Shown piece by piece: positions 3,124 through 19,729 of a DNA stretch of 64,000 bases; positions within the stretch are counted from its first letter, which is position 1; the number at the start of each line of letters is the position of its first letter. The stretch lies in the IMG/VR virus record IMGVR_UViG_3300032296_003307, positions 124,001 through 188,000 of that record, one strand, 5' to 3'. Position numbers and translations under genes: made by a program. A model generated the notes under the pieces. It saw nothing but the letters and a program-made list of their open reading frames with translations. It ran no database searches and had not been told where the DNA came from.

Positions 3124-3124
3124 T

Positions 3125-3601
3125 TTAAGGTCTGAAATAAGATATATCTGCATCAGTGAATCCGTCATTGATTGGAGAAGAATTATCGAATTTATATCTC
3201 ACAAAAAAATCTTTGTAACCTAATTTGTTTTCGGGGTCCACAAAACTACCAACATAATAAAAGGTGGTTAATACGTTATTTTCTATTTCTTCCATTAGTT
3301 TTTCATATTCTTTATCATAGAAAATGCTACTCAAATATCTTAAAGTGCCGTAATTACCACTCATGATTAAATTAATATATGGTGCTTTTCCCTCGGGTGT
3401 AAAAAGACCAAAAAAAATCTGAGGGTCAATCGATATAAGAGTTCTATAACCTATTTCAGGTTCCAAACCAAACTTATTACCGGAAGTCCTACTCGGCTCA
3501 AAACTACCTCTATATTCACCGCTAACAATAAATGGGTATTTTCTTTTGAGTTTTTTTACCGCCATATCGGAAATTTTTTTACCTATACTGTCCCTGTCCA
3601 T
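3125..3601 (-). CDS. Hypothetical protein (KRKYP family)
   Basis: Start reassigned to MDRDSIGKK, with TATTTAT upstream on the minus strand. Confidence 0.7.
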   Translation of the reverse strand: MDRDSIGKKISDMAVKKLKRKYPFIVSGEYRGSFEPSRTSGNKFGLEPEIGYRTLISIDPQIFFGLFTPEGKAPYINLIMSGNYGTLRYLSSIFYDKEYEKLMEEIENNVLTTFYYVGSFVDPENKLGYKDFFVRYKFDNSSPINDGFTDADISYFRP

Positions 3602-3659
3602 AACTAAACAATAAATACAACGCAAGGTACAAATATACCTCTTAAAGTATTTATAACAT

Positions 3660-4001
3660 ATGAACTTTAGAGAAGAAACAAATAGAATAAAAGAATTAAT
3701 TTGTGAAACCTCGGATTTGAAATTCAAACGAAGAAACGCAGACGTTGAAAGATTCTTAAGGCAAGTCATGGAATATCTTTCAGTTTGTGATTACGAAGAT
3801 AAAGTACAATTTTTTATTGCTGTTTTATTGTCGGTAAGAGAAGACGAACTGATAAGTAGCAATGAATCTTTTGACGGAAAAGAAGTCTCAGACTTTATTG
3901 AAGACCACTACAAAGAAGAAATATATTACTATTATGAATATTACTATGATTTGGAGTGTGGAAAAAAAGAAATAACCGAATATCCCAATTTTGTTTACTA
4001 A
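3660..4001 (+). CDS. Leader-bearing small helical protein (KRR..C paralog family)
   Basis: MNFREETNRIKELICE...KFKRR...CDY; TATTTATA upstream. Confidence 0.75.
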   Translation: MNFREETNRIKELICETSDLKFKRRNADVERFLRQVMEYLSVCDYEDKVQFFIAVLLSVREDELISSNESFDGKEVSDFIEDHYKEEIYYYYEYYYDLECGKKEITEYPNFVY

Positions 4002-4025
4002 TTTATTTTAGTTATATTTGTGAAC

Positions 4026-4244
4026 ATGAATACTAATGTAATAACTAATCATATGGATACTTATTTTTGGGTTGACAAAGTAATTAACTCATGTACTACA
4101 AAAAAACAAGCCAAAACAGGTATAAAGTTGGTTGGGTTATGGCAAAACATGTTTATAAATCAGTTAGATAGGGAAGAACTAATATACCTTTCAACAAAGT
4201 TAAACAAACGTGCTCTTGAAAAGTATTATTCATTGAATATCTAA
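4026..4244 (+). CDS. Hypothetical protein
   Basis: ATG 5 nt after a TATATTTG promoter box. Confidence 0.7.
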   Translation: MNTNVITNHMDTYFWVDKVINSCTTKKQAKTGIKLVGLWQNMFINQLDREELIYLSTKLNKRALEKYYSLNI

Positions 4245-4270
4245 TTGTGTTTTTGGACTATTTATTTATA

Positions 4271-4600
4271 ATGTCCAAAAAAGAACTCAAAAAAACCATA
4301 TTAAGAATATTGTCAGAAGAAACTTCTGAGGACTTGCCTTTAAAATTAAAAAGAAGGTACTCTAATTTAGTGGATGAATATGAACATACTCTTTCTTTCC
4401 ACAGAATGTGCGAATATGAGGATATTTCGGGTTTTATATCAAATTTGGTATCAGAAATTCAATTTTTAAGCACAAAGAATATACATGAAATTTCTAAACT
4501 TATTTTTTCATATTATACTCAAAATCCATCAAAAACCAAAAAAATGTTGAAACAAGCATTTATAGAAACATGGAATCAACGATGTAAAAAATCAAACTAA
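4271..4600 (+). CDS. Leader-bearing small helical protein (KRR..C family)
   Basis: MSKKELKKTILRILSEE...LKRR...CEY. Confidence 0.75.
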   Translation: MSKKELKKTILRILSEETSEDLPLKLKRRYSNLVDEYEHTLSFHRMCEYEDISGFISNLVSEIQFLSTKNIHEISKLIFSYYTQNPSKTKKMLKQAFIETWNQRCKKSN

Positions 4601-4601
4601 C

Positions 4602-5546
4602 ATGGAGGACTACTCAGTAAAATTTATAAGAAGGGTAAAAGATTTTGAAGAGTTTATTATGGATACTTGGCCTGTAAGAAATCCATGCGACTATGATGAT
4701 ATTGGTCAATACATAAGGGCGATTTACCAAGAGATTGCTGAAATAATTGATGAAGGTGAATTGGATGGAATTTATGTCAGTGAGTGGTTGGATTATGAAG
4801 AAGGAAAAAAATATGTGGATGAAGTTTTAAAGTCAAAAATAGTTGAAAATTATTATTGGAATTGTGGGGATGACGACATGATTACAGAAAACGTAAATTC
4901 AGAAGATGTGATAAATAAATTAGTTGATAAACTGTATGACTATACAATTGGAACCAAACAAGTAAAAAATAATCCAAGAATGTTTACCACATCGATTTAT
5001 TTCACAAACAAAAATGATAAACACCCTGAGATTGAACCAATATATTTCACATGGGAACTTGATAGTGTATGGTCTCCAAAAAAGCTTTCTTTTAGTGAAT
5101 CTAATAATGGTAAAGTTGGTATGTTTAAAAAATTAGGGGCTGAAAACCAATTTTATGAGTGGGCTCGTGAAAAGGCAAAAAAACACGCCGAAAAACACTT
5201 ATTGAATATAGGGGTTTACTTATCAGAGTCAAAGAACCTCAGAAGAAGAGTATATTTTAAAGACTTAGAAGATAGGTTTGAATATAACCTTCAAAGAGCG
5301 GTAACTTTATACAATAAAAAAGTGGATTGGAAAAGTTTTACACGTGAAAAATTTGAACTTATAGTCCTTACTACATTGATAGATGCAATCCATGAAAAAA
5401 TAGATTGGGTCACCGACCCATCGGGAAAATTGTATGACGAAATATACGATTTTTTAAAAGAAACTTTTGGTGGACAGATTGATAAAAAATTTGATGAAAT
5501 AAGGTTGAATAGAATAACCCAAGACATAAAAAACAAAATATATTAA
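4602..5546 (+). CDS. Multi-module hypothetical protein
   Basis: 314 aa; RR..CDY module, with internal ITE and LSE junction-like motifs. Confidence 0.75.
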   Translation: MEDYSVKFIRRVKDFEEFIMDTWPVRNPCDYDDIGQYIRAIYQEIAEIIDEGELDGIYVSEWLDYEEGKKYVDEVLKSKIVENYYWNCGDDDMITENVNSEDVINKLVDKLYDYTIGTKQVKNNPRMFTTSIYFTNKNDKHPEIEPIYFTWELDSVWSPKKLSFSESNNGKVGMFKKLGAENQFYEWAREKAKKHAEKHLLNIGVYLSESKNLRRRVYFKDLEDRFEYNLQRAVTLYNKKVDWKSFTREKFELIVLTTLIDAIHEKIDWVTDPSGKLYDEIYDFLKETFGGQIDKKFDEIRLNRITQDIKNKIY

Positions 5547-6223
5547 AAATTACCTAAAAACCTGTTAACGAATGACGGTTTAGTGTTTGGTGTAGTGTTT
5601 TTGTCTTTAATCCAATTGTATAGTATTTCTCCCAAATTTTCCGTATTCATTTCTCTATCACCTAAATTATCTTTGATTTGTTTTTTGAAGTTCTGTACCA
5701 TTTTTGTAATACTCGCTGGTGACATGTTTTTATAAACACTAGGAGGAACAAAACCCGATTTAACATAACCTTTGTTTTGAAACTCTCTTAACTTCCTTGA
5801 ACCAAATTCATCCGCGACTATTTCCACACCATACAAAAACTTGGCAGCGTCTTCATCAGAAATTTCATCTTTTAAGTATTCATACATTTTTTCAGCACCA
5901 TATTTTTGATATTGGTATTGGTGGGCAATTTCGTGAAATATTACAAATAATAATAGAGGTAGTGGTTGGCGCAAAACTTGTGTGTTAATCAAAACACCCG
6001 AATGAAGAGCGGCTCCCCAAGCGGGAAAATTAAATCCTGAAAATTCTATTTTTTTACAACCTGATTTTTTAATCGCATCTTCTAATTTATCGGCATGTTC
6101 CTTAAAATTAGGATGCCTTTCCACAATTTCACCAACAAAGTCGTCAATACCCTCAACCGACTCGCACAATACTTTTAATACTAAGTCATTTATTTGTTCT
6201 TTATATAGGAAAGTTTTTTTCAC
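5543..6223 (-). CDS. HExxH zinc metallopeptidase-like protein with leader
   Basis: IFHEIAH motif. GTG start after TATTTATA; leader KKTFLYKEQINDLVLKVLCE. Confidence 0.7.
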   Translation of the reverse strand: MKKTFLYKEQINDLVLKVLCESVEGIDDFVGEIVERHPNFKEHADKLEDAIKKSGCKKIEFSGFNFPAWGAALHSGVLINTQVLRQPLPLLLFVIFHEIAHQYQYQKYGAEKMYEYLKDEISDEDAAKFLYGVEIVADEFGSRKLREFQNKGYVKSGFVPPSVYKNMSPASITKMVQNFKKQIKDNLGDREMNTENLGEILYNWIKDKNTTPNTKPSFVNRFLGNF

Positions 6224-6294
6224 GATGAATATTATTATAAATACCTCTTGGGTATTTATTATGTATACAAATATAGTCAATCTAATTGAATAAA

Positions 6295-6642
6295 ATGAAT
6301 CTAAGGGATAAAATAAAAATGATACTGTCAGAGGAAGAACATTTTACTCCTGAATTTTCCGTACCACCATGGTTAAAAAGAAGGTTTAGAATGTTAGAAA
6401 TGATTGTGTTTAGAGAAACACAGTATGCTGAAAGACAAGACACATATCCTTTTTGTAAAAATTTGTTTAAGAAAAAAGAAGATTATTTTAATTACGTTGT
6501 TGATTGGGCTGAACAACATTTTGACGATATTGAACTACCAAAACAAAAAAAATTGGATATACTGAATCAATTTATGTCAGAAAACTACAAAAAAGAGTTG
6601 TATGACCTATATGAAAAAAAATGTAAGGACTTTATGCGATGA
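6295..6642 (+). CDS. Leader-bearing small helical protein (KRR..C family)
   Basis: MNLRDKIKMILSEE...WLKRR...FC. Confidence 0.75.
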   Translation: MNLRDKIKMILSEEEHFTPEFSVPPWLKRRFRMLEMIVFRETQYAERQDTYPFCKNLFKKKEDYFNYVVDWAEQHFDDIELPKQKKLDILNQFMSENYKKELYDLYEKKCKDFMR

Positions 6643-6916: not shown

Positions 6917-7240
6917 TTATTTACCGCAATTAGAAATTTCTATTTCTTTTTCCCTTCTAAAATTCTCAAACTCACTTACAAATATCATGTGATTAAGTAA
7001 CTCTTGCCAATCAAAAAAATCAGAATCGTCATCGTCATATCGTACATTGAATAAATTACCCAAAACATAGTCTACAGTAGAATGCAACGCATCATTAAAC
7101 ATATCGTAAACTCCATTTTCATATTGGTAATCACAAGGACTTAATCTCTCAACATATTCATTAAACTCACTTATAATATAATCAAAGTGTCTTCTTAATT
7201 TTACTATTTTGGACTGTGATTCAGTAATGAGTATTTTCAT
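6917..7240 (-). CDS. Leader-bearing small helical protein (RR..CDY family)
   Basis: MKILITESQ...LRR...PCDY. Confidence 0.75.
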   Translation of the reverse strand: MKILITESQSKIVKLRRHFDYIISEFNEYVERLSPCDYQYENGVYDMFNDALHSTVDYVLGNLFNVRYDDDDSDFFDWQELLNHMIFVSEFENFRREKEIEISNCGK

Positions 7241-7286: not shown

Positions 7287-8021
7287 ATGAATCTCCAAGA
7301 GAACATTGATAGAATTAAGGAAATGATGGGACTTATTGTCGAATCAGATGACAAAGAGGTTGTTTGTAGTAAATGCGGTTGGTCTTGGGATTTATCTGAG
7401 GGTGGTAATGACCCATATACCTGTCATGAATGTGGTCACACAAATGAAATAAAAGAAAATGATTTAGACGAATATTCAAGGACTCTAAAGAACGCAAGAA
7501 AACAAGGGAGTGGTTTAAGGTTTTCTAAAAGTGCGGTCAAGAACGCACCTTTGAGGTTTAGACCATATAACAGAGAAAATATTGAAGAAGGGGACCCTAA
7601 AGTTGGGACAGGAAAAAAACCTAAAGGTTCTGACAGAAGACTCTACACTGATGAGAATCCAAATGACACGGTTTCAGTTAAGTTTAGAACCAAAGAAGAC
7701 ATAATAGATACCCTTAACAAAGAAAGTTTTAAATCTAAACCACACAAAAGACAGTCACAGATAATTAATCTTATTCATCAACGAGTTAGAGCCGCATATC
7801 AAAACGCAAAAGACTCTGAAACCAAAGATAGGTTAAAAAGAGCATACGACTATATAGAATCTGTAAAAGAAAAATCAAAAGAAAAGACAATCCGACTACA
7901 AAAACAAGAACAAACTGAAAGCGAACTAACAGAAAAATGTTGGAAGGGATATACACAAAAAGGCATGAAAACTATGTTTGGTAAACGATACCCAAACTGT
8001 GTTAAAAAGACAAAGAAATAA
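7287..8021 (+). CDS. Leader-bearing multi-module protein (Zn ribbon, GTGKKPKGS module, CWKGY tail)
   Basis: MNLQENIDRIKEMMGL; CxxC...CxxC; the EKCWKGY...PNCVK motif is familiar from T4-like phage hypotheticals (recalled, not searched). Confidence 0.75.
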   Translation: MNLQENIDRIKEMMGLIVESDDKEVVCSKCGWSWDLSEGGNDPYTCHECGHTNEIKENDLDEYSRTLKNARKQGSGLRFSKSAVKNAPLRFRPYNRENIEEGDPKVGTGKKPKGSDRRLYTDENPNDTVSVKFRTKEDIIDTLNKESFKSKPHKRQSQIINLIHQRVRAAYQNAKDSETKDRLKRAYDYIESVKEKSKEKTIRLQKQEQTESELTEKCWKGYTQKGMKTMFGKRYPNCVKKTKK

Positions 8022-8033
8022 ATATAAAATTTC

Positions 8034-8606
8034 ATGAAAATAATAATCACAGAATCACAATACAAATCATTATTGTCTGAACAAACATCAACAAGTGATG
8101 GATGTAAAGTTTGGGTAGAATCAAAAAACGACCCAAAATACATAAAATATATAAACGCACTAAATTTGTACATGAGAGGAAAATCTATTGTTGACTTCTT
8201 TAGGTCAAATCCTGATGCCACAAATGATATTTTAAATAAAAAAGAAGATGAGTTGGTAAAAAAATACCCTGTAAATAATAGATACTTGGGTTTTGGCTCA
8301 GATAGGATATTATCAATAAATTCAATTATGGTTGGTAAGGGTCGTGCCGCACGATATGCACAACAATATCCAAAACCTGATAAAGTTTGCGTAAGACCAA
8401 CTCCTACGACAACTACAACCACTACCATCGCACCACCACCAAACACAAATGCGTCAATTCAAAAGGCAAACAGTTTATTCCAAAGGTACAATTACATGTC
8501 AACTGAAGACAAAAAAAGAGCGGTGGCGAAATACGGTGACCCAAGCAAAGTGCCATTCCAAGGGGTTGATGTTTTATTATTAAGAAAAGAATATCCAAAT
8601 ATATAA
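8034..8606 (+). CDS. Leader-bearing hypothetical protein
   Basis: MKIIITESQYKSLLSEQ; short PTPTTTTT linker. Confidence 0.75.
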   Translation: MKIIITESQYKSLLSEQTSTSDGCKVWVESKNDPKYIKYINALNLYMRGKSIVDFFRSNPDATNDILNKKEDELVKKYPVNNRYLGFGSDRILSINSIMVGKGRAARYAQQYPKPDKVCVRPTPTTTTTTTIAPPPNTNASIQKANSLFQRYNYMSTEDKKRAVAKYGDPSKVPFQGVDVLLLRKEYPNI

Positions 8607-8615
8607 AAACATGTG

Positions 8616-9134
8616 ATGAATTTACAAGAAAACATATCAAGGATTAAAGAAATGATGGGACTTCTCATAGAAAAAAGAGAAGGATGGTATAATCTTTTAA
8701 GAAAAAAACTACCAAACATGCCCGAATATGTTTTGAAAGATTGGATTTACAGAAAGGTTGATTACTATAAGGATTATGAATCTTTTAATAATTGGTTGGA
8801 TGAATGGATTGTTGGTTTAGATTGGGAATATCAAAAAGATTTTCCAATGACTATGGATATTTTTAGTGACAAAAGTAGAAAGGAATTAGAAGAAAGGATT
8901 AAGGGTTCGGTTAGGTCCGATGTTGACAGAGACGAAGAAAGACACAAAAATCAAAAAGAATTATTAAAGTTACGTGGAATATCAAAAGAACCAATTATTT
9001 TATTTAGGCATGAGGATGGTAAATACGACTTGGGTGAAGGTTGGCACAGAACGGTTCAAGCATTCATTCAATATCCTGACGGATTTATTCAACCAAATGT
9101 ATACATTGGACTTAATGCAAAATGGTTAGATTAA
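8616..9134 (+). CDS. ParB/Srx-like domain protein with leader
   Basis: EPIILF...DLGEGWHR resembles the ParB_N PI.v...i.DG.HR motif; leader MNLQENISRIKEMMGL. Confidence 0.6.
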   Translation: MNLQENISRIKEMMGLLIEKREGWYNLLRKKLPNMPEYVLKDWIYRKVDYYKDYESFNNWLDEWIVGLDWEYQKDFPMTMDIFSDKSRKELEERIKGSVRSDVDRDEERHKNQKELLKLRGISKEPIILFRHEDGKYDLGEGWHRTVQAFIQYPDGFIQPNVYIGLNAKWLD

Positions 9135-9135
9135 A

Positions 9136-9891
9136 ATGAACCTACAAGAAAACATATTAAGAATCAAAGAAGTAATGGGATTACTGTCTGAGGGAAAATC
9201 TGATAAACAGTTTTCAGGTAAAAATAGAATTATAATCATTGGACCACCAACAGTCGGAAAATCTACAGTTGCTGAAGAATTATCAAAACAACTCGGAATC
9301 GAATATGTTAAGTTAGACAAGTTACAAGAAAAAATAGGTCACGGTGATGGAAAAGAGTTGGAGTTAGTTAAAGAGGTACTATCAAACAAATTTGAAAAAT
9401 ACAACACACCATCCATATTAGATTTTGGTGGAGGACACGTCTATAATAAAGGAGTTAAAGGATTACTCAAAGATTATCCGAATGTAATATTGTTAATGCC
9501 GTCCAAGAACCAATCAAAGTCAGAAGAACTTTTAATGAAAGGAAACACCGAAAGATGGACAGGATTCATAGACCAAATAATTAAAGGGTTAAAAAGTGGA
9601 AAACACAATCATACAAAGGAAAAGGAATCTGAACTAATAGACAAACTGAAAAAGATGAAAAAGGGTGAAGGAGGAAAGTTCCACAAGAAAGATTTACCGA
9701 ACATACCTGAAATGAAAGGATGGGGAGGATTAAACTTGGATAAGGATTGGAACAAACATGTCCCTTTAACCAAAGAGGAGGATAGCATAAACAAAGAGAT
9801 TGCCAAACACACAGTTATTGTGTATGATAAGAATGGGGATAGAAAAACGCCATCAGAGATTGTAAAAGACATTAAAAAAATATTGAAATGA
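9136..9891 (+). CDS. Shikimate-kinase-like P-loop kinase with leader
   Basis: IIIIGPPTVGKSTVAEELS Walker A, D.D, and ILDFGGG, as in the aroK-like NMP kinase fold. Confidence 0.65.
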   Translation: MNLQENILRIKEVMGLLSEGKSDKQFSGKNRIIIIGPPTVGKSTVAEELSKQLGIEYVKLDKLQEKIGHGDGKELELVKEVLSNKFEKYNTPSILDFGGGHVYNKGVKGLLKDYPNVILLMPSKNQSKSEELLMKGNTERWTGFIDQIIKGLKSGKHNHTKEKESELIDKLKKMKKGEGGKFHKKDLPNIPEMKGWGGLNLDKDWNKHVPLTKEEDSINKEIAKHTVIVYDKNGDRKTPSEIVKDIKKILK

Positions 9892-10739
9892 GATTAAGAG
9901 AATCCATAAAAAGAATATTAGAGGAATACACAAAACAACTGAAAGATATGTTGGTTCCCGCAAATCCTAAAGGTAAATTACACCATTATTCAAGTTATCA
10001 AAACAGGGAAAGCATTCAAAAAAACGGTTTGATACCAAAAGTGGGGAGACAAACCACAAATTATATGTCAAAACAGTTTCCTGATGTTGAACCAATGCCA
10101 TTAATATTCACTCAAGACCCAAAACACGGTAATTTCTTCGGTGTTTATGGTAATGATATATGGGAAATAGATTTGAGCAAAGTAAATGCGAAGTGGTATC
10201 ATGACCCAATACATAAAGATGACGGAAACAATTGGGCGTTTTACGTCACGACAGACCCAATCCCACCATCGGCAATCAAACTAATTGGTTCAAATGAACA
10301 AAGAGATGATGACATGGAAGTTTATCGTCAGACAGGAAAGTTCCCAAACAGAAATGTGGAACCTGAAGAACCTAAAAAACCCGAAGAACCTGACATATGG
10401 GATGAAATATTGAGTCAAATCGGTGATGATGACTACATAACAATTCCTGCAGAGTATTTAAAAGAATCCACAAGAAGAACACTAAAGGAAATTACAAATC
10501 CAAATACCAAAAGAAGACATAATCAAATAAGACGACTTTTGATTATTATTTTGGAGAATTCAATAACTTGCGGTCCTGATTATGAACAGTATGAGAAATC
10601 TGTGCTTGATGACGTGGAAACGTTTATGAATGTTTTAGAAATAAAAGGACTAAGCGGACGTGAGGTAAAAGACCATATTGAAGAATATTTGATGTATTTT
10701 ATAAAGAGATATTACACCGAAGCCCAAGAAGATTGTTAA
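9888..10739 (+). CDS. ADP-ribosyltransferase/Tpt1-like domain plus C-terminal KRR..C module, with leader
   Basis: LHHYSSYQNRESIQKNGL...IFT...IWEIDL...IPPSAIKL pattern of His-type ART folds. Confidence 0.55.
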   Translation: MRLRESIKRILEEYTKQLKDMLVPANPKGKLHHYSSYQNRESIQKNGLIPKVGRQTTNYMSKQFPDVEPMPLIFTQDPKHGNFFGVYGNDIWEIDLSKVNAKWYHDPIHKDDGNNWAFYVTTDPIPPSAIKLIGSNEQRDDDMEVYRQTGKFPNRNVEPEEPKKPEEPDIWDEILSQIGDDDYITIPAEYLKESTRRTLKEITNPNTKRRHNQIRRLLIIILENSITCGPDYEQYEKSVLDDVETFMNVLEIKGLSGREVKDHIEEYLMYFIKRYYTEAQEDC

Positions 10740-10740
10740 T

Positions 10741-11289
10741 ATGAACCTACAAGAATCCATAAGAAGAATATTAAGGGAAGAATTAGAACATACTACATTT
10801 GAATCTTTTTTTTCAAAATACGGAGAAGATGTTTTGGAAATTATGAATAATCATTTTGATGAAGAAGTTACGATTAAAGAACTTGAAAAATATTATAATG
10901 ATGAAATTAAATATTTAAATAAAATAATAAACCAAAAACTACCAATATTTAGGTTAATAAAAGTTAATGATAATGTTTTAGAGAGTTTTATAAAATCAAA
11001 AAAAATTAAATCTGGTATATTTTGGACTTTAAATAAACAAGTAACAAAATATTGGGTATCTAGTGATTTATATGATGATAGATTTGAACTTGGTGGTGAC
11101 AATACTATTATTTTTGAGTCTGAATTATCTAATGAATTAGATATTGACATAGAAGGTACAATATTTGCTAGATTTACTTCATCATATGAAGATGAAATAA
11201 GGTTATTGGCAAATAACCCTATTAATATTAAAAATGTATTTGTTAATGGTAAAAAAATTAACATAGAAAATAAAATATTCATATCATAA
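10741..11289 (+). CDS. Possible R-S/T-E-type ADP-ribosyltransferase-like protein with leader
   Basis: LPIFR...GIFWTL...YEDEIRL motif spacing. Confidence 0.45.
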   Translation: MNLQESIRRILREELEHTTFESFFSKYGEDVLEIMNNHFDEEVTIKELEKYYNDEIKYLNKIINQKLPIFRLIKVNDNVLESFIKSKKIKSGIFWTLNKQVTKYWVSSDLYDDRFELGGDNTIIFESELSNELDIDIEGTIFARFTSSYEDEIRLLANNPINIKNVFVNGKKINIENKIFIS

Positions 11290-11744
11290 TGAACCTACAA
11301 GAATCCATAAGAAGAATATTAAAAGAAGAAATTGATTCAAAAGATATTAGTTCTTATTTGGATGTATCACCATTTTATAAATTACCATACCCATATCAAA
11401 AATCATTAATGATATTTAAAAATGAGGGAACTACAAATGATATGGAGATTAAAGATTTAATTGATGATGAGTTACAAACTTCTTTTAAAAGAAAAATGTA
11501 TTACTATGGAGTTGTCCCAATTAAATTAATAGAAGATGAGGTTACAGAACGATTAGGATGGGATAGTTTTGAGAATTACCATAAATGGTATGGTGATGAA
11601 GAAACGGACCACGGAGATTCGGTATTACCAATCATAATAGATTTTGATGATGAAGAATTAATTATAGATGGTTGGCACAGATTCCACTCCTATGTTAGAA
11701 AAGGATTAACTAAAATCCCAGTATTGGGTGTATACGTTGATTAA
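11289..11744 (+). CDS. ParB/Srx-like domain protein with leader
   Basis: LPIIID...IIDGWHRFHSYVRKGLTKIPV. Confidence 0.7.
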   Translation: MNLQESIRRILKEEIDSKDISSYLDVSPFYKLPYPYQKSLMIFKNEGTTNDMEIKDLIDDELQTSFKRKMYYYGVVPIKLIEDEVTERLGWDSFENYHKWYGDEETDHGDSVLPIIIDFDDEELIIDGWHRFHSYVRKGLTKIPVLGVYVD

Positions 11745-11745
11745 T

Positions 11746-12174
11746 ATGAACCTACAAGAAACCATAAGAAGAATATTAAGGGAAGAAACTTATTCACCTG
11801 CGGGGAAAGAATACACACCAGCAAGAGTTGTTGTTCATACATCAAATCCCGTTGTGAGAGATAATATAAAACTTACAGGGTTACAAGTTTCAGTTGGGGA
11901 ATGTTATCAAGTATACGTAAACAGAAACGAAACTAATCCCGATAAAATTAAATGTAAAAAAGCGATATTTGCCACGGATTCATTGAAAAATAGGGACATG
12001 TTTAATTCAACATATGACGATGATATTTGGTTGATTAATACTGAGTGTGCGAATGTTAAGTGGTATAAGGACAAACATTTTGATTACCCTGACTCAAAAC
12101 ACATAGTAACATTTGAAAACATATCACCTGAGTGTATCAAATTGATTCATAAAGGTACTGGTAAAAGTCGTTAA
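11746..12174 (+). CDS. ADP-ribosyltransferase/Tpt1-like protein with leader (paralog of 9888)
   Basis: VVHTSNPVVRDNIKLTGL...IFAT...DIWLI...KWYKD...ISPECIKL aligns by eye with 9888. Confidence 0.55.
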   Translation: MNLQETIRRILREETYSPAGKEYTPARVVVHTSNPVVRDNIKLTGLQVSVGECYQVYVNRNETNPDKIKCKKAIFATDSLKNRDMFNSTYDDDIWLINTECANVKWYKDKHFDYPDSKHIVTFENISPECIKLIHKGTGKSR

Positions 12175-12557
12175 TAAACAGGTGGTGTAGCTCTTTCAGG
12201 ATATATTGTTACCTCATCAACTTCATCTTCGACTTGTTCGTCAACCCATTCAGAAATAATATCAAGAATTTTGCTCACCCTTATTTTGATTATCTTTCTA
12301 AAGAAATCCACAAGATTCGGATGAACTTGTAAACTACCTATGCCATTGTGTACGGTATCGTCATCATCATCATAAGCACCACCTGGACCATACCAAATAT
12401 AATATAACATTTTATTGTCGTTTCTATCATACATTTTGATGGTGTAACTATTTTCACTATATAAACTTTGTTCTTTGGATTGATTAACGATGTTCTTATC
12501 CAGGTACTTATGAATAACATCTTTAGATTGCGTGTCGGTTATAATGTAACGAGCCAT
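12171..12557 (-). CDS. Leader-bearing hypothetical protein
   Basis: MARYIITDTQ; TATTTATA upstream. Confidence 0.7.
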   Translation of the reverse strand: MARYIITDTQSKDVIHKYLDKNIVNQSKEQSLYSENSYTIKMYDRNDNKMLYYIWYGPGGAYDDDDDTVHNGIGSLQVHPNLVDFFRKIIKIRVSKILDIISEWVDEQVEDEVDEVTIYPERATPPVY

Positions 12558-12668
12558 ATTAGATATAAATATAAGGGGTAGGGGGTTTGGGGATGGTAAT
12601 TAGTTAGATTAGTAGGTAATTTAAAAAATTAATTTTTATTTTTGATTTAAAAATTATATCTTTGTATT

Positions 12669-13262
12669 ATGGATAATGTTACTTATTTAAAAGAACAGGT
12701 GGAAAGAAAAATTACACTAAACGATTATGTTAAGGCATATTATGATTGTGATATTTTACCATTTCCTCCCGAAAAAAATAACTTAGTTAATCAAATTGCA
12801 ATTTTAGCAATTGAATATAAAAATAAACATTTAAATACCTATAAAAGAAGAATCAACGAACAAGGGAATGACCAAGAAGAACATTTGAAAAATTCTATGA
12901 ATAATATTTTAAATGGTATTTTTAAATTATTGGGGACTGGATATCCTGACGTTGGTGGTAAAGCTGAAGAACTTGAATTTCCGTTATACTGTGATTCAAA
13001 GATTCGTAAAAATTTAATTGATAAAGAAAGTATTCGCAGTTTTTATACATCTACGCCGGCAAAAAAAACTAAAAACAAAAAGGACCTTAAAACAGGATAT
13101 CACTTGTTATTCATTTTTGAACATGATGGAAACGGTAAACTAACCGGCAAATACCGAGTTTCTGATTTAAACGGTTTTATTTACACTTCATTTGGTAATA
13201 AACAAGAAGGTTCTTATAGCGACATTTTATCCCATAACAAGTTTATTGCGGAGAATCTATAA
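12669..13262 (+). CDS. Putative type II restriction endonuclease / PD-(D/E)xK protein
   Basis: YPDV...CDSK fits PD..DxK. Lies directly upstream of a methyltransferase, behind a TATCTTTG promoter. Confidence 0.4.
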   Translation: MDNVTYLKEQVERKITLNDYVKAYYDCDILPFPPEKNNLVNQIAILAIEYKNKHLNTYKRRINEQGNDQEEHLKNSMNNILNGIFKLLGTGYPDVGGKAEELEFPLYCDSKIRKNLIDKESIRSFYTSTPAKKTKNKKDLKTGYHLLFIFEHDGNGKLTGKYRVSDLNGFIYTSFGNKQEGSYSDILSHNKFIAENL

Positions 13263-13298
13263 TCTTGTATTTCTTCAATTATTTCTTATAATTAACAC

Positions 13299-14123
13299 AT
13301 GGACATTAATAGAATATATCATGAGGATTGTTTGAATACTATGAAGAATATGCCAAATAATTTTGTATCACTAACAGTTACCTCACCACCATATGATGAT
13401 TTAAGAACATATAATAATAAAGTTAAGGGTTTATCAACCGAATTCAACGGATACTCATTTGATTTTGAAAATATTGCACGAGAGTTATATCGTGTTACAA
13501 AATCTGGAGGTGTTGTGGTATGGGTAGTTGGGGATGCAACACACAATGGTTCAGAAACAGGAACATCTTTTAGACAGGCATTATTTTTTAAAGAGGTTGG
13601 ATTTAATATCCACGATACAATGATATACATGAAGAACAATTTTTCAAATCCTTCTTCTAATAGATATCATCAGATATTTGAGTATATGTTTGTTTTATCT
13701 AAAGGTAAACCAACAACATTTAATTCAATCAAAGACAGGAAGAATGTCTATGGAGGTCAAGTCGGTTCATGGGGTAAAAATACTGTTAGACAAAAGGACG
13801 GAACCATGAAGGAAAACACTAAAAAAGTAATAGAAGAATATGGTCAAAGATACAATGTTTGGCAATATAAAACATCTAAAAATGGACAAGAAGACGAGGT
13901 TGCTTACGAACATCCGGCAATATTCCCTATTGATTTGGTTAAAGACCACATTATTTCATGGACAAACCCTGGCGAAATAGTATATGACTGTTTTATGGGT
14001 AGCGGAACTACAGCAAAAGCAGCAACGGCATTAAATAGATTGTGGATTGGTTCTGAAATAAATGAAGAATATGTTGATATTTGCAACAGAAGACTCAATA
14101 GTATACAAACAGAAATAATTTAA
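13299..14123 (+). CDS. Beta-class DNA methyltransferase (N4-C/N6-A)
   Basis: Motif IV TSPPY precedes motif I DCFMGSGTT; HPAIFP..L and GSEINEEY also present. Confidence 0.93.
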   Translation: MDINRIYHEDCLNTMKNMPNNFVSLTVTSPPYDDLRTYNNKVKGLSTEFNGYSFDFENIARELYRVTKSGGVVVWVVGDATHNGSETGTSFRQALFFKEVGFNIHDTMIYMKNNFSNPSSNRYHQIFEYMFVLSKGKPTTFNSIKDRKNVYGGQVGSWGKNTVRQKDGTMKENTKKVIEEYGQRYNVWQYKTSKNGQEDEVAYEHPAIFPIDLVKDHIISWTNPGEIVYDCFMGSGTTAKAATALNRLWIGSEINEEYVDICNRRLNSIQTEII

Positions 14124-14998
14124 AAAGGGGTAGGGGATAATCAGTTCCCGGCTTCACACAGATTATACTAAAAGGTATTATACCATAAAGTATAACCATT
14201 CACTCATGGTGTTTCACTCCGTTCCACACATTCGTTCATAGTTATACTTTATTCCCCACTTAGTTAATCTATAGGTTTACTTCCGTACCTGTAATGTCAA
14301 GTTATATATTGACTTGTTTACAGTAACCTGTTTACTGTAAACTAATCGTATCGGTTATCGTATATTTACGTATCATTACGTATCAGATTCCCCCATCCTC
14401 ACGAGCCCCCATCATAAGAATGGTCCACAGGTGAGGGGTTCACCGATAATGTGGCTCAGTGGTTTATCATTTACGGCTCACAAAACCCTATGGGGTGAGC
14501 CAATTAGTAAACCACAGTGAGCCACAACACCGACATAGGTCATAATGGGACTTCATAGATAAGGTTGTCCCACATTCTACCACATCACTATTATACCCTA
14601 CTGAATGGACCAATTGAGGTCTTCATGATTGGGGTAAATGAGGGGGTCACATAACAAGGGACACGGTTGAAGAAGGGGTTTCTATCATAGGACTTCGTCT
14701 CCCCCACCTATGTTCCATTACTTACATTATTCTCTGGGAAACACATATAGTAAAAAAAGTGGTTCTAGTGATATCAGGAGAGGGGATTTTTTAGGTAGTT
14801 TCCCTTGTGGTGCTATCGTAAGGGGTAATTTATGGATGGGGTCTTAGTGGTGGTGGGAAAAAGTGGGGGAACCAAAACCCCGTAAAGGGATTGTGTAGTG
14901 TCGAGCGAGCAACTGACATTTTGACAAAATCAAGTTTTTCCCCCTATACTTATCCACATTCTCACATATATTTATGTGTATAAATTCCCCCTGACAAT

Positions 14999-15370
14999 AT
15001 GACAGAAGAAGTTATCCACATTTCAGGTTCCACAAATAATCCACATAAAGTGGGGGACCATAACTATGATTTATTGTTCCACACTTTTTTCACCCCTATC
15101 ATAGAACATAAGGATGGGGGAATAACCATTACATGGAAACTAAAGAAAGGACCATCCCATGTTCAGGGGTGGGTATATTTGGAACAACCAAAGAAGGGGT
15201 GGAAAAGAAAACCTATTATGACAAACCATTATACAATGACCAATACCAATCTCAACCGTATTCACGAGTTCATGGATAAGTATATTATCTACAAGAGTGA
15301 TTCACATGAAAGGGTTAAACGTTTCTTTCTAAATGAATCCATTAGATTGGTTAAGGAAGAAAAGGTTTAA
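14999..15370 (+). CDS. Hypothetical protein (start uncertain)
   Basis: 123-aa ORF whose 5' end overlaps DnaA boxes, so it may start later. Confidence 0.4.
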   Translation: MTEEVIHISGSTNNPHKVGDHNYDLLFHTFFTPIIEHKDGGITITWKLKKGPSHVQGWVYLEQPKKGWKRKPIMTNHYTMTNTNLNRIHEFMDKYIIYKSDSHERVKRFFLNESIRLVKEEKV

Positions 15371-15767
15371 TGTCCCTGTAACAGAGATTCCATACTTTCT
15401 CATATTCCCTTGCTTCAATCTCCATAGGGTGATTCCAATAACCATACTTCTGATACATCTTGTTGTATGTCTTCTCCCCCTTCTGTAGAGTGTGAGCGTA
15501 TTCATGAATAACAATGGCAATTAACTTACGTACACAGTTCCCCAACTCTGAAAAGGTATGGGGGTAAATTGTAATCCTATGGTTAGCATCCACGTAGTCA
15601 CCATAGAAGGGGTCAGTCTTAAACTTCTTCTTTGACACCTTAAGTTCAGGGAGACCCTTCTTCTTTTTAAACCCCATATTTTTGACACACCAATTAAAGG
15701 CAAGTTCCACAACAAGGGACGACTCCTTATGAGTTAAAGATGAGATGGGGGTATTACAATTAATCAT
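15351..15767 (-). CDS. SprT-like HExxH metallopeptidase
   Basis: FYGDY...ITIY...VIHEYAHTLQ...PMEIEAR; TACCTTTG promoter upstream. Confidence 0.75.
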   Translation of the reverse strand: MINCNTPISSLTHKESSLVVELAFNWCVKNMGFKKKKGLPELKVSKKKFKTDPFYGDYVDANHRITIYPHTFSELGNCVRKLIAIVIHEYAHTLQKGEKTYNKMYQKYGYWNHPMEIEAREYEKVWNLCYRDIKPFLP

Positions 15768-16215
15768 ACCACAAAGGTACTGAATAACTTTGACACTACC
15801 AAATTATTTTCTTCCCCCTATTATTGGGGCGAGCCGCCTCTGATTAAGCTTCAGTGAACGAGTCGTCCCCAGCCCTTGGTCCTCTATCCGATTTCCCACA
15901 ATACAAAGATAGTGAATAGGTATGGAATAAACTAATCCCCCATCCTAAGAGTTATCCACATCGACATGTTTATAAGTGGGGGGTCCATAAGTTATCCACA
16001 AAGGGGTGGGGGTAAAATGTGGATAAGTCCCCCCATACACCCCCCCCGTTATATGGGGGTGGGGGTCCCCCCTGTGACACCCTGTCAGGTATCCCCCCCC
16101 TCTCCCCCCGTCATTTTGTCAGTTTAGGGGGGTCAATACCTTCGATGAAATTTCTGGAAAAATTTTTGGGAAATTCGGTTTATATTTTAATTTAAATTTA
16201 TTAACATAAGGTGAC

Positions 16216-16890
16216 ATGGAAAAAAAAACTTACATTAGTCAGGAAGAATTGGACAGAATAATGTCATATATAAAATTGTGTGAGGATTGGAATTACTATA
16301 TAATACTTCATAATTTGGTTGTACACCAACGACATTTTAACGAACTTAAAGATACAAAACCTATTATACCTGAGGGGATTCCTATCCCTGAAAAAAACCC
16401 TTTTGAGATTACAATAAGAGCGGTTAATAAAAGATTAAAATTTTATCAATACAAACTTGGTTTAAAAGACATTAATTTATCCACCAAAATATTTTCAAAA
16501 AGGTTTGCTGTTAGTGGGAAAATATTTTACGGTATATTAAATACCGATAAAAATAGTTATAAAAAAACTGAAGAAGGTTATGTGTATATTGTAAAACACA
16601 GTCATAGAAATCCTGAAATATCCAAGCGATTAACCGATAAAAAAGTGGGTATTTCATTTGACTATACTCGAAGAATAAATGGTTTAACATTGGGGACCAT
16701 TGGTATTGAAGTGATAAGGGCGTGGAAAATGTCTTCACATATGGCAAGGTTTATGGAAAAAACAATACACAACGAATTAAAGGAATGCAGATTGGTTGGG
16801 GAGTGGTTTTCAGATGATGATGGGAAATTGGTTGGAGAAGTTGAGAAACTAATCGAGTTATATACCCCATCCTCGGTTGAAAACAAGTAA
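16216..16890 (+). CDS. GIY-YIG-like (T5orf172/Mug113-type) domain protein
   Basis: GYVYIV...KKVGIS...RRINGL...EKTIH...GEWF. Confidence 0.75.
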   Translation: MEKKTYISQEELDRIMSYIKLCEDWNYYIILHNLVVHQRHFNELKDTKPIIPEGIPIPEKNPFEITIRAVNKRLKFYQYKLGLKDINLSTKIFSKRFAVSGKIFYGILNTDKNSYKKTEEGYVYIVKHSHRNPEISKRLTDKKVGISFDYTRRINGLTLGTIGIEVIRAWKMSSHMARFMEKTIHNELKECRLVGEWFSDDDGKLVGEVEKLIELYTPSSVENK

Positions 16891-16893
16891 TCT

Positions 16894-17325
16894 ATGGATA
16901 AGATGAGTCATGTTTGGAAAACAGATAAACTTATATGTAAAGATATTTGTTTTGAGTGCGGTTCTGACTATGCAATTCATTTTCATCATGTTGTACCTAA
17001 ATCAAAAGGAGGGAAAAATGCAATACCATTATGTGAAAAATGTCATGGATTAGTTCATAACAGGAAATTCAATGAACACAGAAAGTTACAGATGGAAGGA
17101 ATTGAAAGGGCTAAATTAAATGGTACGTATAAGGGAAGAAAATGTGATACACCTGAGACACCTGAAAAATTTATGGGAAAAGAAAAAATACAAAAGGTAA
17201 TGATTGAATTATTGGCAGGTAAAAAAGGTACTGTTATATCTAAAGAAATAAATGTACATATAAATACCATCTCAAAGGTGAGAAAATATATGGTAAATTA
17301 CCCTGATTTGGTTCCCCATCCCTAA
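16894..17325 (+). CDS. HNH endonuclease with resolvase-like C-terminal helix/HTH
   Basis: CFECG...HFHHVVPKSKGG...LCEKCHGLVH, then EGIERAKLNGTYKGRK and a terminal HTH-like segment. Confidence 0.8.
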   Translation: MDKMSHVWKTDKLICKDICFECGSDYAIHFHHVVPKSKGGKNAIPLCEKCHGLVHNRKFNEHRKLQMEGIERAKLNGTYKGRKCDTPETPEKFMGKEKIQKVMIELLAGKKGTVISKEINVHINTISKVRKYMVNYPDLVPHP

Positions 17326-17425
17326 TTCCTAATTCCCCTTCGGTAATATATTCTCTTATATGGTGGGGGTTCGGTATAATTATTCCTGAACGGTAAATTC
17401 CCAATGGTCGGGGTATTTATATATT

Positions 17426-17920
17426 ATGAAAAAGGTTGTAAGATTAACCGAGTCTGATTTACTTAGGGTTGTTAAAAGGGTTCTTAAAGAAGAATATACT
17501 CCTGAGAAAGAAAGTGAGTATTACAAATTAACCCTTCAAAGAGATTTCATTAAATCCCAATTAGATTCTTTAAGTAAGAGATATGAAGAAATATCTGAAA
17601 GATTAAATAAAATAGAATTACTTTACCATCCAAAATTAATAATAAGTTTTGTAAAGGGTAAACGAGGAGAAAAAGGGGATAGATACTCGGGTAGAATTAT
17701 GATTCCAAACAAATACAGGATGAATCCTAAAAGTGAAAACGAAAGATTCTACTCTATAGTTTCATCACCAAAAAACGCTTCTGAATATACAGGCAAGGAT
17801 GACCCCAAATTAATTAAAGATTTAACAAATGAATTTAGAAAAAAATTCTCAAACCCCAAGTGGTTAGATTTGTTAAACTTCAACCCTGATGATATATTGT
17901 TTGATAAAAATATAAATTAA
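17426..17920 (+). CDS. Leader-bearing hypothetical protein
   Basis: MKKVVRLTESDLLRVVKRVLKEE. Confidence 0.8.
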   Translation: MKKVVRLTESDLLRVVKRVLKEEYTPEKESEYYKLTLQRDFIKSQLDSLSKRYEEISERLNKIELLYHPKLIISFVKGKRGEKGDRYSGRIMIPNKYRMNPKSENERFYSIVSSPKNASEYTGKDDPKLIKDLTNEFRKKFSNPKWLDLLNFNPDDILFDKNIN

Positions 17921-17927
17921 ATAATTT

Positions 17928-17958
17928 AAACCCCATCCTTCAACAGGTGGGGTTTTTT
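17928..17958 (+). terminator. Intrinsic terminator
   Basis: AAACCCCA/TGGGGTTT stem followed by a T tract. Confidence 0.75.
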
Positions 17959-18104
17959 GTTTTTCCCAAAAAAACTTTTCAATCTGAAATATACCCCATT
18001 TTCAAAAAAAAATTTCCGGAAAAATTTTCAGAAAATTGACTATCTTTGTTCCTTGGGAAAATAAATTTAATCCTTCTTAATGGTTGGGGGAGTATTTATT
18101 GTTT

Positions 18105-18491
18105 ATGAAAAAGGTTGTTATTCTCACAGAATCCGAATTGGTAAATTTAATTGAAAAAATTATTGAAGATAAAAACACTTCCGTAATTGAGGAAGGTTGG
18201 TTTGGTGACATGATTGAGGATATACAATATAATCTTAAATTTTATCTTGGAATTGGTCTTTTATTGTCCTATGGTGTTTTTTCGGGAATTAAGATTTATG
18301 AAAAATCACAGGAACTATCAGGTGAGGAATATTATATGAAGATTTTAAAACCCGCACTTAAACTTCAGGGAAAGAAAAAACTATCTGAATTATCTGATGA
18401 GGTTGGGGAAAAAGATATTTTAATGTATATTCAGCAAAACCCCGATGAGTTTGCCATTGGTGAGAATGGGGAGATTTTCTACAAGGACTAA
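18105..18491 (+). CDS. Leader-bearing protein with one hydrophobic segment
   Basis: MKKVVILTESELVNLIEKIIED; FYLGIGLLLSYGVFSGI. Confidence 0.8.
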   Translation: MKKVVILTESELVNLIEKIIEDKNTSVIEEGWFGDMIEDIQYNLKFYLGIGLLLSYGVFSGIKIYEKSQELSGEEYYMKILKPALKLQGKKKLSELSDEVGEKDILMYIQQNPDEFAIGENGEIFYKD

Positions 18492-18569
18492 TCTTTTTGT
18501 TTCTGATGCCGGAAACGGTTCCCGAATCCCCCGACCCCCTTTTTTTATTTTGGTTGATATTTATAATTT

Positions 18570-18833
18570 ATGAAAAGTATAAGTAAAATAAGACATATCC
18601 AAGAATCAAATTTTAAATTGGAAAAAAGAATTTTATCTGAAGAAGACGAAACCCAATCTATGATGGATGTTTCCTCTGATTCAGATTGGTATCAAAAAAG
18701 AAAACAAGATGTGTCAATCGCTCAAAACGACCTATCAACAATTTTATCCATTGCTTACAGATGGTGCAAAGGTAAGGAAAATTTGCCTGACTGTCAGAAT
18801 GTTAATTCATTGTATATGAAACATTATCTATAA
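18570..18833 (+). CDS. Leader-bearing hypothetical protein
   Basis: MKSISKIRHIQESNFKLEKRILSEE. Confidence 0.75.
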   Translation: MKSISKIRHIQESNFKLEKRILSEEDETQSMMDVSSDSDWYQKRKQDVSIAQNDLSTILSIAYRWCKGKENLPDCQNVNSLYMKHYL

Positions 18834-18849
18834 TAAATTTTTATATCGT

Positions 18850-19374
18850 ATGAAAAAGATTGTAAGATTAAATGAATCCGATTTGATTCGTATTGTTAAA
18901 AGGGTTCTTAAAGAAAATTTGGAATCAAGACCAAATATGATTAGAGTTAGATTAACCCCCGAATTGGAAGAAACAATGATGGAAAGAAATAAGATGGGGG
19001 GAATAGATTTTAATACTGAAATGGATTTAATTTCTGGTATGTGGTACAAAATCGGTCAGGGTCGAGGTAATTTTCACTCTCAAAATTATGAACCCCAATC
19101 GTTTTTCTTTTCAAAATATAAACCAAATCAAAATGAAATTTATACCATGGAAGTTAGATGTCAAGGTAGAGTTCATACCGACATGGCTAAACAGTTAACT
19201 CTTATGTTTGATGAAAGGTTTAATAATTTTCTTAGTAGTGAAAATCCGTACGATAGGTGCTATGATGCGGGTGGATTTTACTCAAAGTTTGAAACTAGAG
19301 ATGGAAAACCAAATTTTGATGTTGGTGAACAAGACCATAGAGGCTATTTTGAAATAACCAAAACTAGCGATTAA
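18850..19374 (+). CDS. Leader-bearing hypothetical protein
   Basis: MKKIVRLNESDLIRIVKRVLKE. Confidence 0.8.
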   Translation: MKKIVRLNESDLIRIVKRVLKENLESRPNMIRVRLTPELEETMMERNKMGGIDFNTEMDLISGMWYKIGQGRGNFHSQNYEPQSFFFSKYKPNQNEIYTMEVRCQGRVHTDMAKQLTLMFDERFNNFLSSENPYDRCYDAGGFYSKFETRDGKPNFDVGEQDHRGYFEITKTSD

Positions 19375-19390
19375 TTGATATTTATATTAT

Positions 19391-19729
19391 ATGAAAAAGA
19401 TTGTTAAACTTAAAGAAGCTGACTTATATAACATTGTTCGTAAAACAATAAACGAAATGGATGGTAATAAGGGTGACTCAATGGATGATTTTTTTAAACA
19501 ATTGAATGATGTTTTGGAGATATACCAAAAAATTGATGATTTGAAAGTAAATCATCTCGATGGTTCTGATTCCGCTGAAAATTATTTAAAATTAAACATA
19601 ATGTATTCCGATATTTTATATAAACTACAAGAAAAAATTTTTCCTAATCGTTTAAAAGTTTTTAATGAGTTGGGTGATAAAGTTAATTATTACGGCAACT
19701 TGTACAATAAGAAAAAAGACGAAATGTAA
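19391..19729 (+). CDS. Leader-bearing hypothetical protein
   Basis: MKKIVKLKEADLYNIVRKTINE. Confidence 0.8.
   Translation: MKKIVKLKEADLYNIVRKTINEMDGNKGDSMDDFFKQLNDVLEIYQKIDDLKVNHLDGSDSAENYLKLNIMYSDILYKLQEKIFPNRLKVFNELGDKVNYYGNLYNKKKDEM

Follow-up and report, generated by a model that had tools for sequence, protein, structure and literature searches.

Translated leader repeats very probably mediate cassette exchange in a hyperplastic region of an uncultured T4-like jumbo phage and may serve as capsid-targeting propeptides

The DNA analyzed here (the window) comprises 64,000 nucleotides, bases 124001-188000 of the 268,739-bp IMG/VR virus contig IMGVR_UViG_3300032296_003307 (32% GC). The window represents a hyperplastic region from an uncultured jumbo phage of the T4-like type, the host of which is probably a member of the Bacteroidota. 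Positions below are those of the window unless stated otherwise, and genes are designated by their first coordinate. Three consecutive genes on the plus strand, at 10741-11289, 11289-11744, and 11746-12174, open with nearly the same DNA, which encodes a short N-terminal peptide (the leader) in front of the rest of the protein (the payload). When all possible N-termini in the genome were searched with profiles, 39 genes matched one of four leader models (A to D), with the matches starting at residues 1-3. All but one of these (38/39) lie inside the window, between 0.7 and 60 kb, and none is found in the immuto-like part of the contig described below. The array is therefore far larger than first noted, with at least 38 leader genes. 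The leader peptides are 5-22 residues long. The A leader reads MKKVVRLTESDL.. and ends in ..KE, and the B, C, and D leaders read MKIIITESQ..., MKRFVITE.EK..., and MNLQE.I.RI..., respectively. A fifth type (E) is common to genes 24783 and 29997, the latter encoding a GH108 muramidase. Looser variants are present in genes 4271, 27118, 28070, 33578, and 38205 and in the PPK2 gene 53799. The clustering of leader types by position, claimed in the original prediction, was confirmed in the window, and the leaders are again clustered by type in loci fetched from IMG/VR.

The three genes at 10741-12174 all carry the D leader. The products of genes 10741 (182 aa) and 11289 (151 aa) match the leader hidden Markov model (HMM) with 33.9 and 33.7 bits, respectively. 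The payload of 10741 has no match in Pfam, PHROG, or the PDB and no relative in IMG/VR; 11289 has no Pfam match, and comparison of both proteins with PDB sequences gave nothing usable. A DGWHR motif at the C-terminus of the 11289 protein is reminiscent of ParB-like domains, a likeness of motif only; a ParB-like identity was not confirmed for 8616 or 11289. Gene 11746 encodes a protein of 142 aa. An AlphaFold2 model of this family, built on a 26-sequence alignment, has a pLDDT of 78.8; leader residues 1-16 appear as a detached low-confidence helix, and the payload is modeled as folding independently. Tpt1/KptA chains were returned first when the model was compared with the PDB using Foldseek (E values of 2e-4 to 2e-3), followed by the ADP-ribosyltransferase (ART) domains of PARP and pierisin. 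On this model the 11746 payload is predicted to have an ART-superfamily fold, closest to Tpt1/KptA. More than 176 homologous clusters carry the leader, and two D-leader subtypes occur within it. The three payloads had been described as unrelated. This holds for 10741 and 11289, which are without detectable relatives in the window, but not for 11746, the payload of which is paralogous to the N-terminal domain encoded at 9888-10739 (33% identity, E value of 1e-11).

The 34-nt start common to 10741 and 11289 recurs exactly, with 0 matches in 100 dinucleotide shuffles, and the same string recurs with one mismatch at the start of 11746. The repeat family is 47 nt in length, including 5 nt upstream of the ATG, and its members are 89-98% identical and end abruptly at codon 15. 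Copies 1, 2, and 3 are located on the plus strand at 10736-10782, 11284-11330, and 11741-11787, respectively; copies 2 and 3 were assigned from the repeat family and the shuffles, and copy 3 also from the junction alignment described below. At shared amino acid residues the pairs formed by the three genes have identical codons at 12/12, 12/12, and 11/11 positions, where about 6 are expected (P of 1e-4 to 6e-4). This is about twice the codon identity explained by the peptide. The protein-level constraint, beyond which leader DNA identity was not to rise if the original prediction were wrong, is thus exceeded for these three copies. The remaining D-leader pairs agree at 5-7 of 11 codons against an expectation of about 6, which is the level of chance, and the A-leader pairs show a modest excess (9-13 identical codons against 6-9 expected). 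Near-identity of leader DNA therefore stands for 10741, 11289, and 11746 but not for the other D pairs, and in the A pairs it amounts to a modest excess. The near-identity is thus a recent event limited to three copies.

A strain variant of the phage was found through near-identical 20578 proteins on other contigs. It was assembled twice, in ENA ERZ27275033 (contigs L135 and L143) and in JGI 3300010354 (contigs L136 and L144), and the parts that it shares with the window have 96-99% identity; the differences are gene-sized events. The window arrangement is present in JGI 3300032296 and, at 100% identity, in ENA ERZ28594494 and Logan ERR2848545. Genes 10741 and 11289 are missing from the variant (L135/L143). 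The missing segment, 10783-11740, lies between leader copies 1 and 3, the left and right recombination partners, which are spaced by 1005 bp. The blastn alignments around it overlap by 47 nt in the variant, and the junction is identical in the two samples. The variant has a single gene in place of 10741-11746, with the upstream flank of copy 1, the T of that copy at 10757, and the payload of 11746. The combination of the copy 1 flank and the 11746 payload in one gene therefore places the crossover within the 47-nt leader repeat, with leader copies 1 and 3 as the bounds of a deletion or an insertion.

Two further segments missing from the variant end inside leaders. The segment at 8661-9135 was lost or gained by a crossover inside the D leaders of 8616 and 9136; the variant gene begins as 8616 and goes on as 9136, with the switch in a 14-nt stretch that is identical in both D leaders. 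The segment at 21081-21411 is bounded by a crossover inside the A leaders of 21029 and 21412, and the same junction is found in contig L136 from the second sample. Gene 23898-24761 is also missing, with 11 nt of microhomology around the start codons. A multicassette replacement between the strains spans 16176-19386, where only the intergenic boxes and the leaders are conserved, at 87-95% identity. At gene 18105, about 55 nt of upstream sequence and the first 17 codons are approximately 97% identical between the strains, and the sequences are unrelated thereafter. Likewise at gene 18570 the leader and upstream box are kept and the payload is different. Both payload swaps start at the 3' edge of the leader. 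The array also contains a restriction-modification pair at 12669-14123 (an MjaV-like endonuclease and an N6_N4 methyltransferase), in place of which the variant (L135 1223-3326) has a different restriction-modification pair, the methylase being 64% identical at the DNA level, and an extra D-leader gene.

Payload content also differs among more distant relatives. Three complete relatives with a capsid protein 75-80% identical have almost no payloads in common with the window, and the BLAST matches are confined to leader residues 1-25. Stable gene content across relatives would have spoken against the original prediction; instead, cassettes are lost or swapped in a strain of 96-99% identity, and few payloads are common to the three relatives. 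The proposal that the leader DNA serves as a recombination handle is likewise supported, with three deletion junctions inside leader repeats and two payload swaps at the leader 3' edge. Each rearrangement keeps an intact fusion of leader and payload, and the open reading frame is preserved at every junction. Leader-mediated homologous recombination very probably deletes, inserts, and replaces the payload cassettes, because copies of the leader DNA, often with a TATTTATW box just upstream, recur throughout the array. The domain boundaries suggest capture of new cargo. The locus had also been described as integron-like without an integrase. A tyrosine integrase (PF00589) was absent from the four genomes searched (G000, G001, G003, and G005), in a search for which the control found PF00589 in 14/14 genomes, and each of the four genomes contains a gene for a RecA/UvsX-like recombinase. 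The absence of an integrase is thus confirmed, but the integron label is an analogy only, and the mechanism is instead general homologous recombination at short repeats.

The conservation of the leaders extends well beyond the window. A search of IMG/VR with a degenerate A leader found more than 587 places on hundreds of contigs, at least 414 of which were confirmed, and the 79 IMG/VR loci fetched hold arrays with the same four leader types. In a set of 153 distinct A-leader DNAs, many synonymous codons are used for the conserved residues, including switches between TTR and CTN for Leu, TCN and AGY for Ser, and AGR and CGN for Arg. This free synonymous variation argues for selection on the amino acid sequence, and the leaders are therefore taken to be conserved peptides first of all and not DNA repeats alone. 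No cultured phage matched in a tblastn search with a 25-residue leader, a query that is too short, and no publication turned up when the literature was searched for the leader strings.

The payloads are of many kinds, and many are orphans. Those with an assignment include an ART fold, a P-loop kinase, an ECF sigma factor, a GH108 muramidase, and PPK2, and the known enzyme domains begin only downstream of the leader. In Pfam and PHROG scans the leaders were not covered by any family, and most payloads remained unassigned. Clustering of 425 leader proteins gave 244 payload clusters, of which 173 are singletons, and more than one leader type is present within 10 of the 71 multimember clusters. 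The ECF-type sigma factor (sigma-70 regions 2 and 4) is encoded at 34640-35206 behind a B leader and a TATTTATW box; if packaged, this product would be an injected sigma factor. The polyphosphate kinase 2 (PPK2) encoded at 53799-54923 has a 126-residue N-terminal extension that opens with a D-like leader, and the A-leader gene at 21763-22494 contains an internal tandem duplication of a domain of approximately 100 residues. A homologue of the 20578 payload, identical to it at 88% (DNA) and 92% (protein), is located on contig L137 in a wholly different neighborhood.

The TATTTATW box is exemplified by positions 21017-21024 (plus strand), and the modal distance from the start of the box to the ATG is 12 nt. 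Of 107 such boxes, 64 are positioned 8-40 nt upstream of a start codon on the same strand, compared with 2.8 by random placement. The box precedes 55 of 104 leader genes and 246 of 1233 other genes (p = 2e-12). The TAnnTTTG box of the Bacteroidota type is depleted, with 3/104 for leader genes and 136/1233 for the others (p = 0.007). In four genomes the TATTTATW box, a putative late promoter, is conserved ahead of the genes for portal, protease, and scaffold. An alternative assignment as a T4 late promoter in reverse complement, placed on the wrong strand, was dropped, as the orientation and the fixed spacing to start codons place the box on the coding strand. The repeated DNA originally reported in the 17.4-22.5 kb block was recovered as a 93-nt unit in eight copies of 61-78% identity, which consists of the promoter-like box and the first ~23 codons. 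In this A-leader run a terminator-like hairpin and the promoter-like box stand ahead of the leader; the GC hairpin followed by a T run at 19735-19772 (plus strand) has similar copies at 17924-17961 and 22512-22549. The D run is without intergenic spacers. The cassette borders seen are leader repeats or overlaps of stop and start codons.

The leaders are interpreted here as putative capsid-targeting propeptides for diverse injected cargo, with a probability of approximately 0.55. In this mechanism the leader would load the payload into the prohead core, a T4-type (S77) prohead protease would cut after an invariant [LI]-x-E motif, and the mature payload would enter the next host, injected with the DNA. 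The leader would be kept by selection as a capsid-targeting propeptide, the address label doubling as a recombination site, and the array would constitute a plug-and-play arsenal of injected effectors. An [LI]-x-E motif ends within the first 12 residues of 418/425 leader proteins (98%) compared with 221/1233 other proteins (18%). It is the most invariant feature of all four leader types, and its position is fixed for each type: L7 and E9 in the A leader (225/227 proteins), residues 5 and 7 in B (118/123), residues 6 and 8 in C (31/32), and residues 3 and 5 in D (37/43). An S77 prohead protease is encoded in 15/15 of the leader-bearing contigs of at least 117 kb that were tested and in the genome of the window (genome 233341-234051), and leader genes are found inside the head modules of relatives G003 and G001. 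The TATTTATW box in common with the head genes, the depletion of the host-type box, the detached leader helix in the 11746 model, and the start of known domains downstream of the leader agree with the interpretation as well. The 11746 payload has a predicted ART fold, and the Alt protein of T4, which is packaged and processed by the protease, is likewise an ADP-ribosyltransferase. The T4 protease gp21 cuts after L/I-x-E, and a 10-residue N-terminal capsid-targeting sequence (CTS) that ends in I-A-E suffices for packaging (PMC9026906); the CTS is the sole sequence shared by the T4 internal proteins (PMC3012670). A prediction of the complex between protease and leader returned no answer (score of 0.00).

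Several observations weigh against this interpretation. A Flavobacterium phage of the immuto type has an S77 protease but no A leader, and the leaders are thus not general to S77 phages. The conservation of the A leader extends 13 residues beyond the first [LI]-x-E. The leaders have no significant similarity to the T4 CTS; a Q-E-x-I likeness of the D leader was noted by eye, without an alignment tool. At least 40 cargo species would be packaged, far above the number in T4. Some payloads (18105 and 29997) contain hydrophobic segments, and a sigma factor and PPK2 are unexpected cargo. The assignment of TATTTATW as a late promoter derives from the genes downstream of it, and the box is also found upstream of some replication-region genes in the immuto-like part of the contig. 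A close cultured phage was not found, the best capsid-protein match being 41-46% identical over 37-41%. It is tentatively proposed, at a level below that of the capsid-targeting interpretation itself, that translated address labels shared across the lineage load dozens of enzymes (an ART-fold protein, kinases, a sigma factor, a muramidase) into the capsid for injection and also serve as in-frame recombination sites, so that effectors ready for packaging could pass between any phages of the lineage. Distinct loading or release behavior might be encoded by the four to five leader classes.

The leaders could instead be functional docking elements, a helix or strand that binds the payloads to one hub (a host or phage complex, a chaperone, or a protease adaptor), with the DNA recombination as a by-product. 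Such a role would agree with the selection on the peptide, with the conservation that runs past the first [LI]-x-E, and with payloads such as the sigma factor and PPK2 that act in the cytoplasm; the beta-strand-plus-helix pattern read from the sequences of the A, B, and C leaders would suit strand addition to a partner. Docking is nevertheless considered unlikely, because it leaves the [LI]-x-E motif as the invariant core of four otherwise different leaders unexplained and gives no account of the link to phages with an S77 protease, of the box in common with the head genes, or of the depletion of the host-type box. It is very unlikely that the 5' ends matter chiefly as nucleic acid, either as a translation-initiation or regulatory RNA element or as pure recombination homology, with the peptide incidental. 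The leaders are A/U-rich and are placed at a fixed 12 nt from the conserved box, the leaders of the three genes at 10741-12174 are identical beyond the constraint of the peptide, and the crossovers fall within leader DNA, but in the 153 variants the amino acids stay fixed across synonymous codons, six-fold family switches included, and the other D-leader pairs match in their codons at chance only.

An ordinary family of tandem paralogues, with one gene duplicated repeatedly, the C-terminal parts diverged, and no exchange of cassettes, would explain the paralogous payloads of 9888 and 11746, the runs of paralogues in relative G003, and the internal domain duplication in 21763-22494. The payloads nevertheless have different known folds (ART, P-loop kinase, sigma-70 regions 2 and 4, GH108, PPK2, and GNAT in the variant strain), a single payload family can carry different leader types, and the identity falls from approximately 97% to none at the leader edge between strains that are otherwise 96-99% identical; this explanation is highly improbable. 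Collapse or misjoining at short repeats could in principle create the strain differences as assembly artifacts, given that the repeats are short, the data are metagenomic, and the source contig is itself probably chimeric at thyA. Artifact is extremely improbable, however, as the recombinant form was assembled independently in two data sets (ENA ERZ27275033 and JGI 3300010354) and the window form in three (JGI 3300032296, ENA ERZ28594494, and Logan ERR2848545), a typical read is longer than the 47-nt repeats, and the open reading frame is intact at every junction.

The source contig contains two divergent sets of T4-type head genes, each with a Peptidase_S77 prohead protease and a Gp23 capsid protein, at 31-35 kb and 233-238 kb. 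Contig bases 6-120 kb are syntenic with Flavobacterium phage immuto. The remainder belongs to a lineage of metagenomic phages of 240-321 kb, the capsid protein of which is 75-80% identical to the second copy; these relatives have one protease gene and one capsid gene apiece. An independent ENA contig of 111.8 kb matches the source contig at 99.4% identity rightward of a position within thyA (genome ~119.2 kb) and differs leftward, where it holds genes of the jumbo lineage, unlike the immuto-like side of the source contig. Because the independent contig matches only to the right of the join, the 268.7-kb contig is most likely an assembly chimera joined inside thyA, with an immuto-like phage and its own portal, protease, and capsid genes on the left and the jumbo lineage with a second set on the right. 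The loci behind this observation (L146, L147, L151, and L152) meet the source contig at genome ~119.2 kb, just upstream of the window. The window and all of the leader genes fall in the jumbo-lineage part. On contig L137 a gene for an I-TevI-like homing endonuclease splits thyA (region 11989-14207), in a manner that resembles the td intron of T4. A 297-nt stretch of the D-leader gene 7287-8021 (window 7593-7889) is 72% identical to genome 8206-8502 in the immuto-like part, and the domain is therefore common to both phage types.

The other leader genes are distributed along the window as follows. Upstream, within 703-6642 on the plus strand, a C leader is present in 703, D leaders in 3660 and 6295, and a D-like leader in 4271 (leader HMMs), followed by a B-leader gene on the minus strand at 6917-7240 (leader HMM). 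The plus-strand run at 7287-10739 comprises the D-leader genes 7287, 8616, 9136 (P-loop kinase-like), and 9888 (with the N-terminal ART-fold paralogue) and the B-leader gene 8034. The run at 17426-22494 (plus strand) holds the A-leader genes 17426, 18105, 18850, 19391, 20578, 21029, 21412, and 21763, the B-leader gene 19790, and the variant-leader genes 18570 and 20204. It is followed on the same strand by two C-leader genes, 22569 and 23898, which flank a pair of small genes (22569-24761, leader HMMs), and by an E-leader gene at 24783-25250. A mixed run at 25587-29497 (plus strand) includes B leaders in 25587, 25895, 26590, and 29210, D leaders in 27702 and 28724, and D-like leaders in 27118 and 28070. 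The E-leader gene at 29997-30977 (plus strand) encodes a hydrophobic segment and a GH108 muramidase (lysozyme) domain (Pfam PF05838, residues 149-248). Leader genes at 31686-39273 on the plus strand are of the A (31686 and 38531), A-like (33578 and 38205), B (34640 and 36329), and C (36796 and 38866) types, and a D-like leader gene is situated on the minus strand at 32404-32682. Scattered leader genes at 48252-60359 are 48252 (C), 58947 (A), 59715-60359 (B, minus strand), and the PPK2 gene 53799 with its D-like N-terminus.

Other features of the window were also recorded. The region at 14950-16026 contains 5 of the 7 perfect TTATCCACA (DnaA-box) matches in the window, where 1.2 are expected window-wide. 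This stretch is richer in GC, mostly noncoding, and contains G runs and C runs, and its conservation in the strain variant is 98%; these features make it a candidate for an origin-like or DnaA-binding region. Two genes of typical homing-endonuclease types are located at 16216-17325, one GIY-YIG-like (T5orf172/MUG113) and the other encoding an HNH endonuclease. Both are missing in the variant, which has another HNH-like gene in a different cassette. The products of four large genes at 39353-47853, of up to 1281 aa, contain Cys-rich modules and long linkers rich in Thr, Pro, and Ser. They have no match in Pfam, a TATTTATW box precedes two of the four, and the predicted proteins may be fiber or surface proteins. 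In DNA searches of the phage collection the array matched the methylase only, and a megablast search with the large genes matched nothing. Two adjoining tRNA-Ser genes with the anticodons GCT and TGA lie on the minus strand at 58219-58437. An alternative genetic code and frameshifts were considered and dropped, as every gene is open under table 11.

The array resembles the genes for the T4 internal proteins IPI, IPII, and IPIII, in which a short N-terminal peptide that ends in L/I-x-E, the gp21-type cleavage motif, is common to otherwise unrelated small proteins. Internal proteins of the T4 type have diverse payloads that vary between related phages, and some of them counter host defenses (PMC3012670, PMC9026906, PMC4122927). 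T4 has three such genes, whereas the array described here has about 40 per genome with four to five leader classes and is known from sequence. The CTS of T4 is MKTYQEFIAE (bioRxiv 10.1101/2021.01.19.427310), to which the present leaders are not detectably homologous. Dozens of head-internal proteins are processed in phiKZ-like jumbo phages after the glutamate of a three-residue motif by a gp21-related protease (PMC9026906). In those phages, which belong to another lineage, the motif is S/A-x-E, and each protein family has its own long propeptide, in contrast to the few short leaders shared here.

Exchange at repeats is also known from T4-like phages. PeSL elements are short repeats between the ORFan genes of T4-like hyperplastic regions, at which homologous recombination deletes, inserts, and replaces cassettes, and homologous recombination has been noted at the T4 internal-protein locus too (PMC2839356, PMC4122927). 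As with PeSL, the breakpoints of indels and replacements between close relatives fall in the repeated element. PeSL, however, combine a stem-loop with a sigma-70-like early promoter, are noncoding, and stop at the start codon, whereas here the homology enters the reading frame, and every exchange is therefore an in-frame protein fusion. Within the tightly packed D run the homology is limited to the first 15-23 codons. Hairpins are present at few junctions, and the TATTTATW box is not a sigma-70 early promoter and differs from the host-type motif. Integrons likewise line up single-gene cassettes that are promoter-proximal and exchangeable and that turn over very rapidly; they differ in that the four genomes here contain no integrase, recombination is of the general homologous kind, and the shared element is translated. 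Inverted repeats of the attC type were not seen flanking the cassettes, though no search was aimed at attC. Polymorphic toxin loci (CDI and Rhs) combine a conserved delivery part with variable C-terminal payloads, and their cassettes are displaced by homologous recombination at the conserved junction. Their delivery parts are very large and each toxin has an immunity gene, whereas the leaders here have 5-22 residues and no immunity-like partners are evident. The array is thus an extension of known kinds, the T4 internal-protein/CTS loci and the shuffling of the PeSL type, and is remarkable for its scale, its several leader classes, and an exchange site that is itself a translated tag.

Independently of any role in the capsid, the strain junctions provide a clean natural case of in-frame, leader-mediated gene shuffling. 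If the capsid-targeting interpretation is correct, the T4 internal-protein principle would be stretched to a self-shuffling modular arsenal of effectors, with about 40 per genome and hundreds of payload families among environmental relatives, and the array would be a natural demonstration of a translated tag that doubles as the homology for cassette exchange. The combination of a leader and [LI]-x-E would then be a sequence rule with which injected effectors and anti-defense candidates could be found in metagenomes, and the short tags might serve to load foreign proteins into the heads of Bacteroidota phages.

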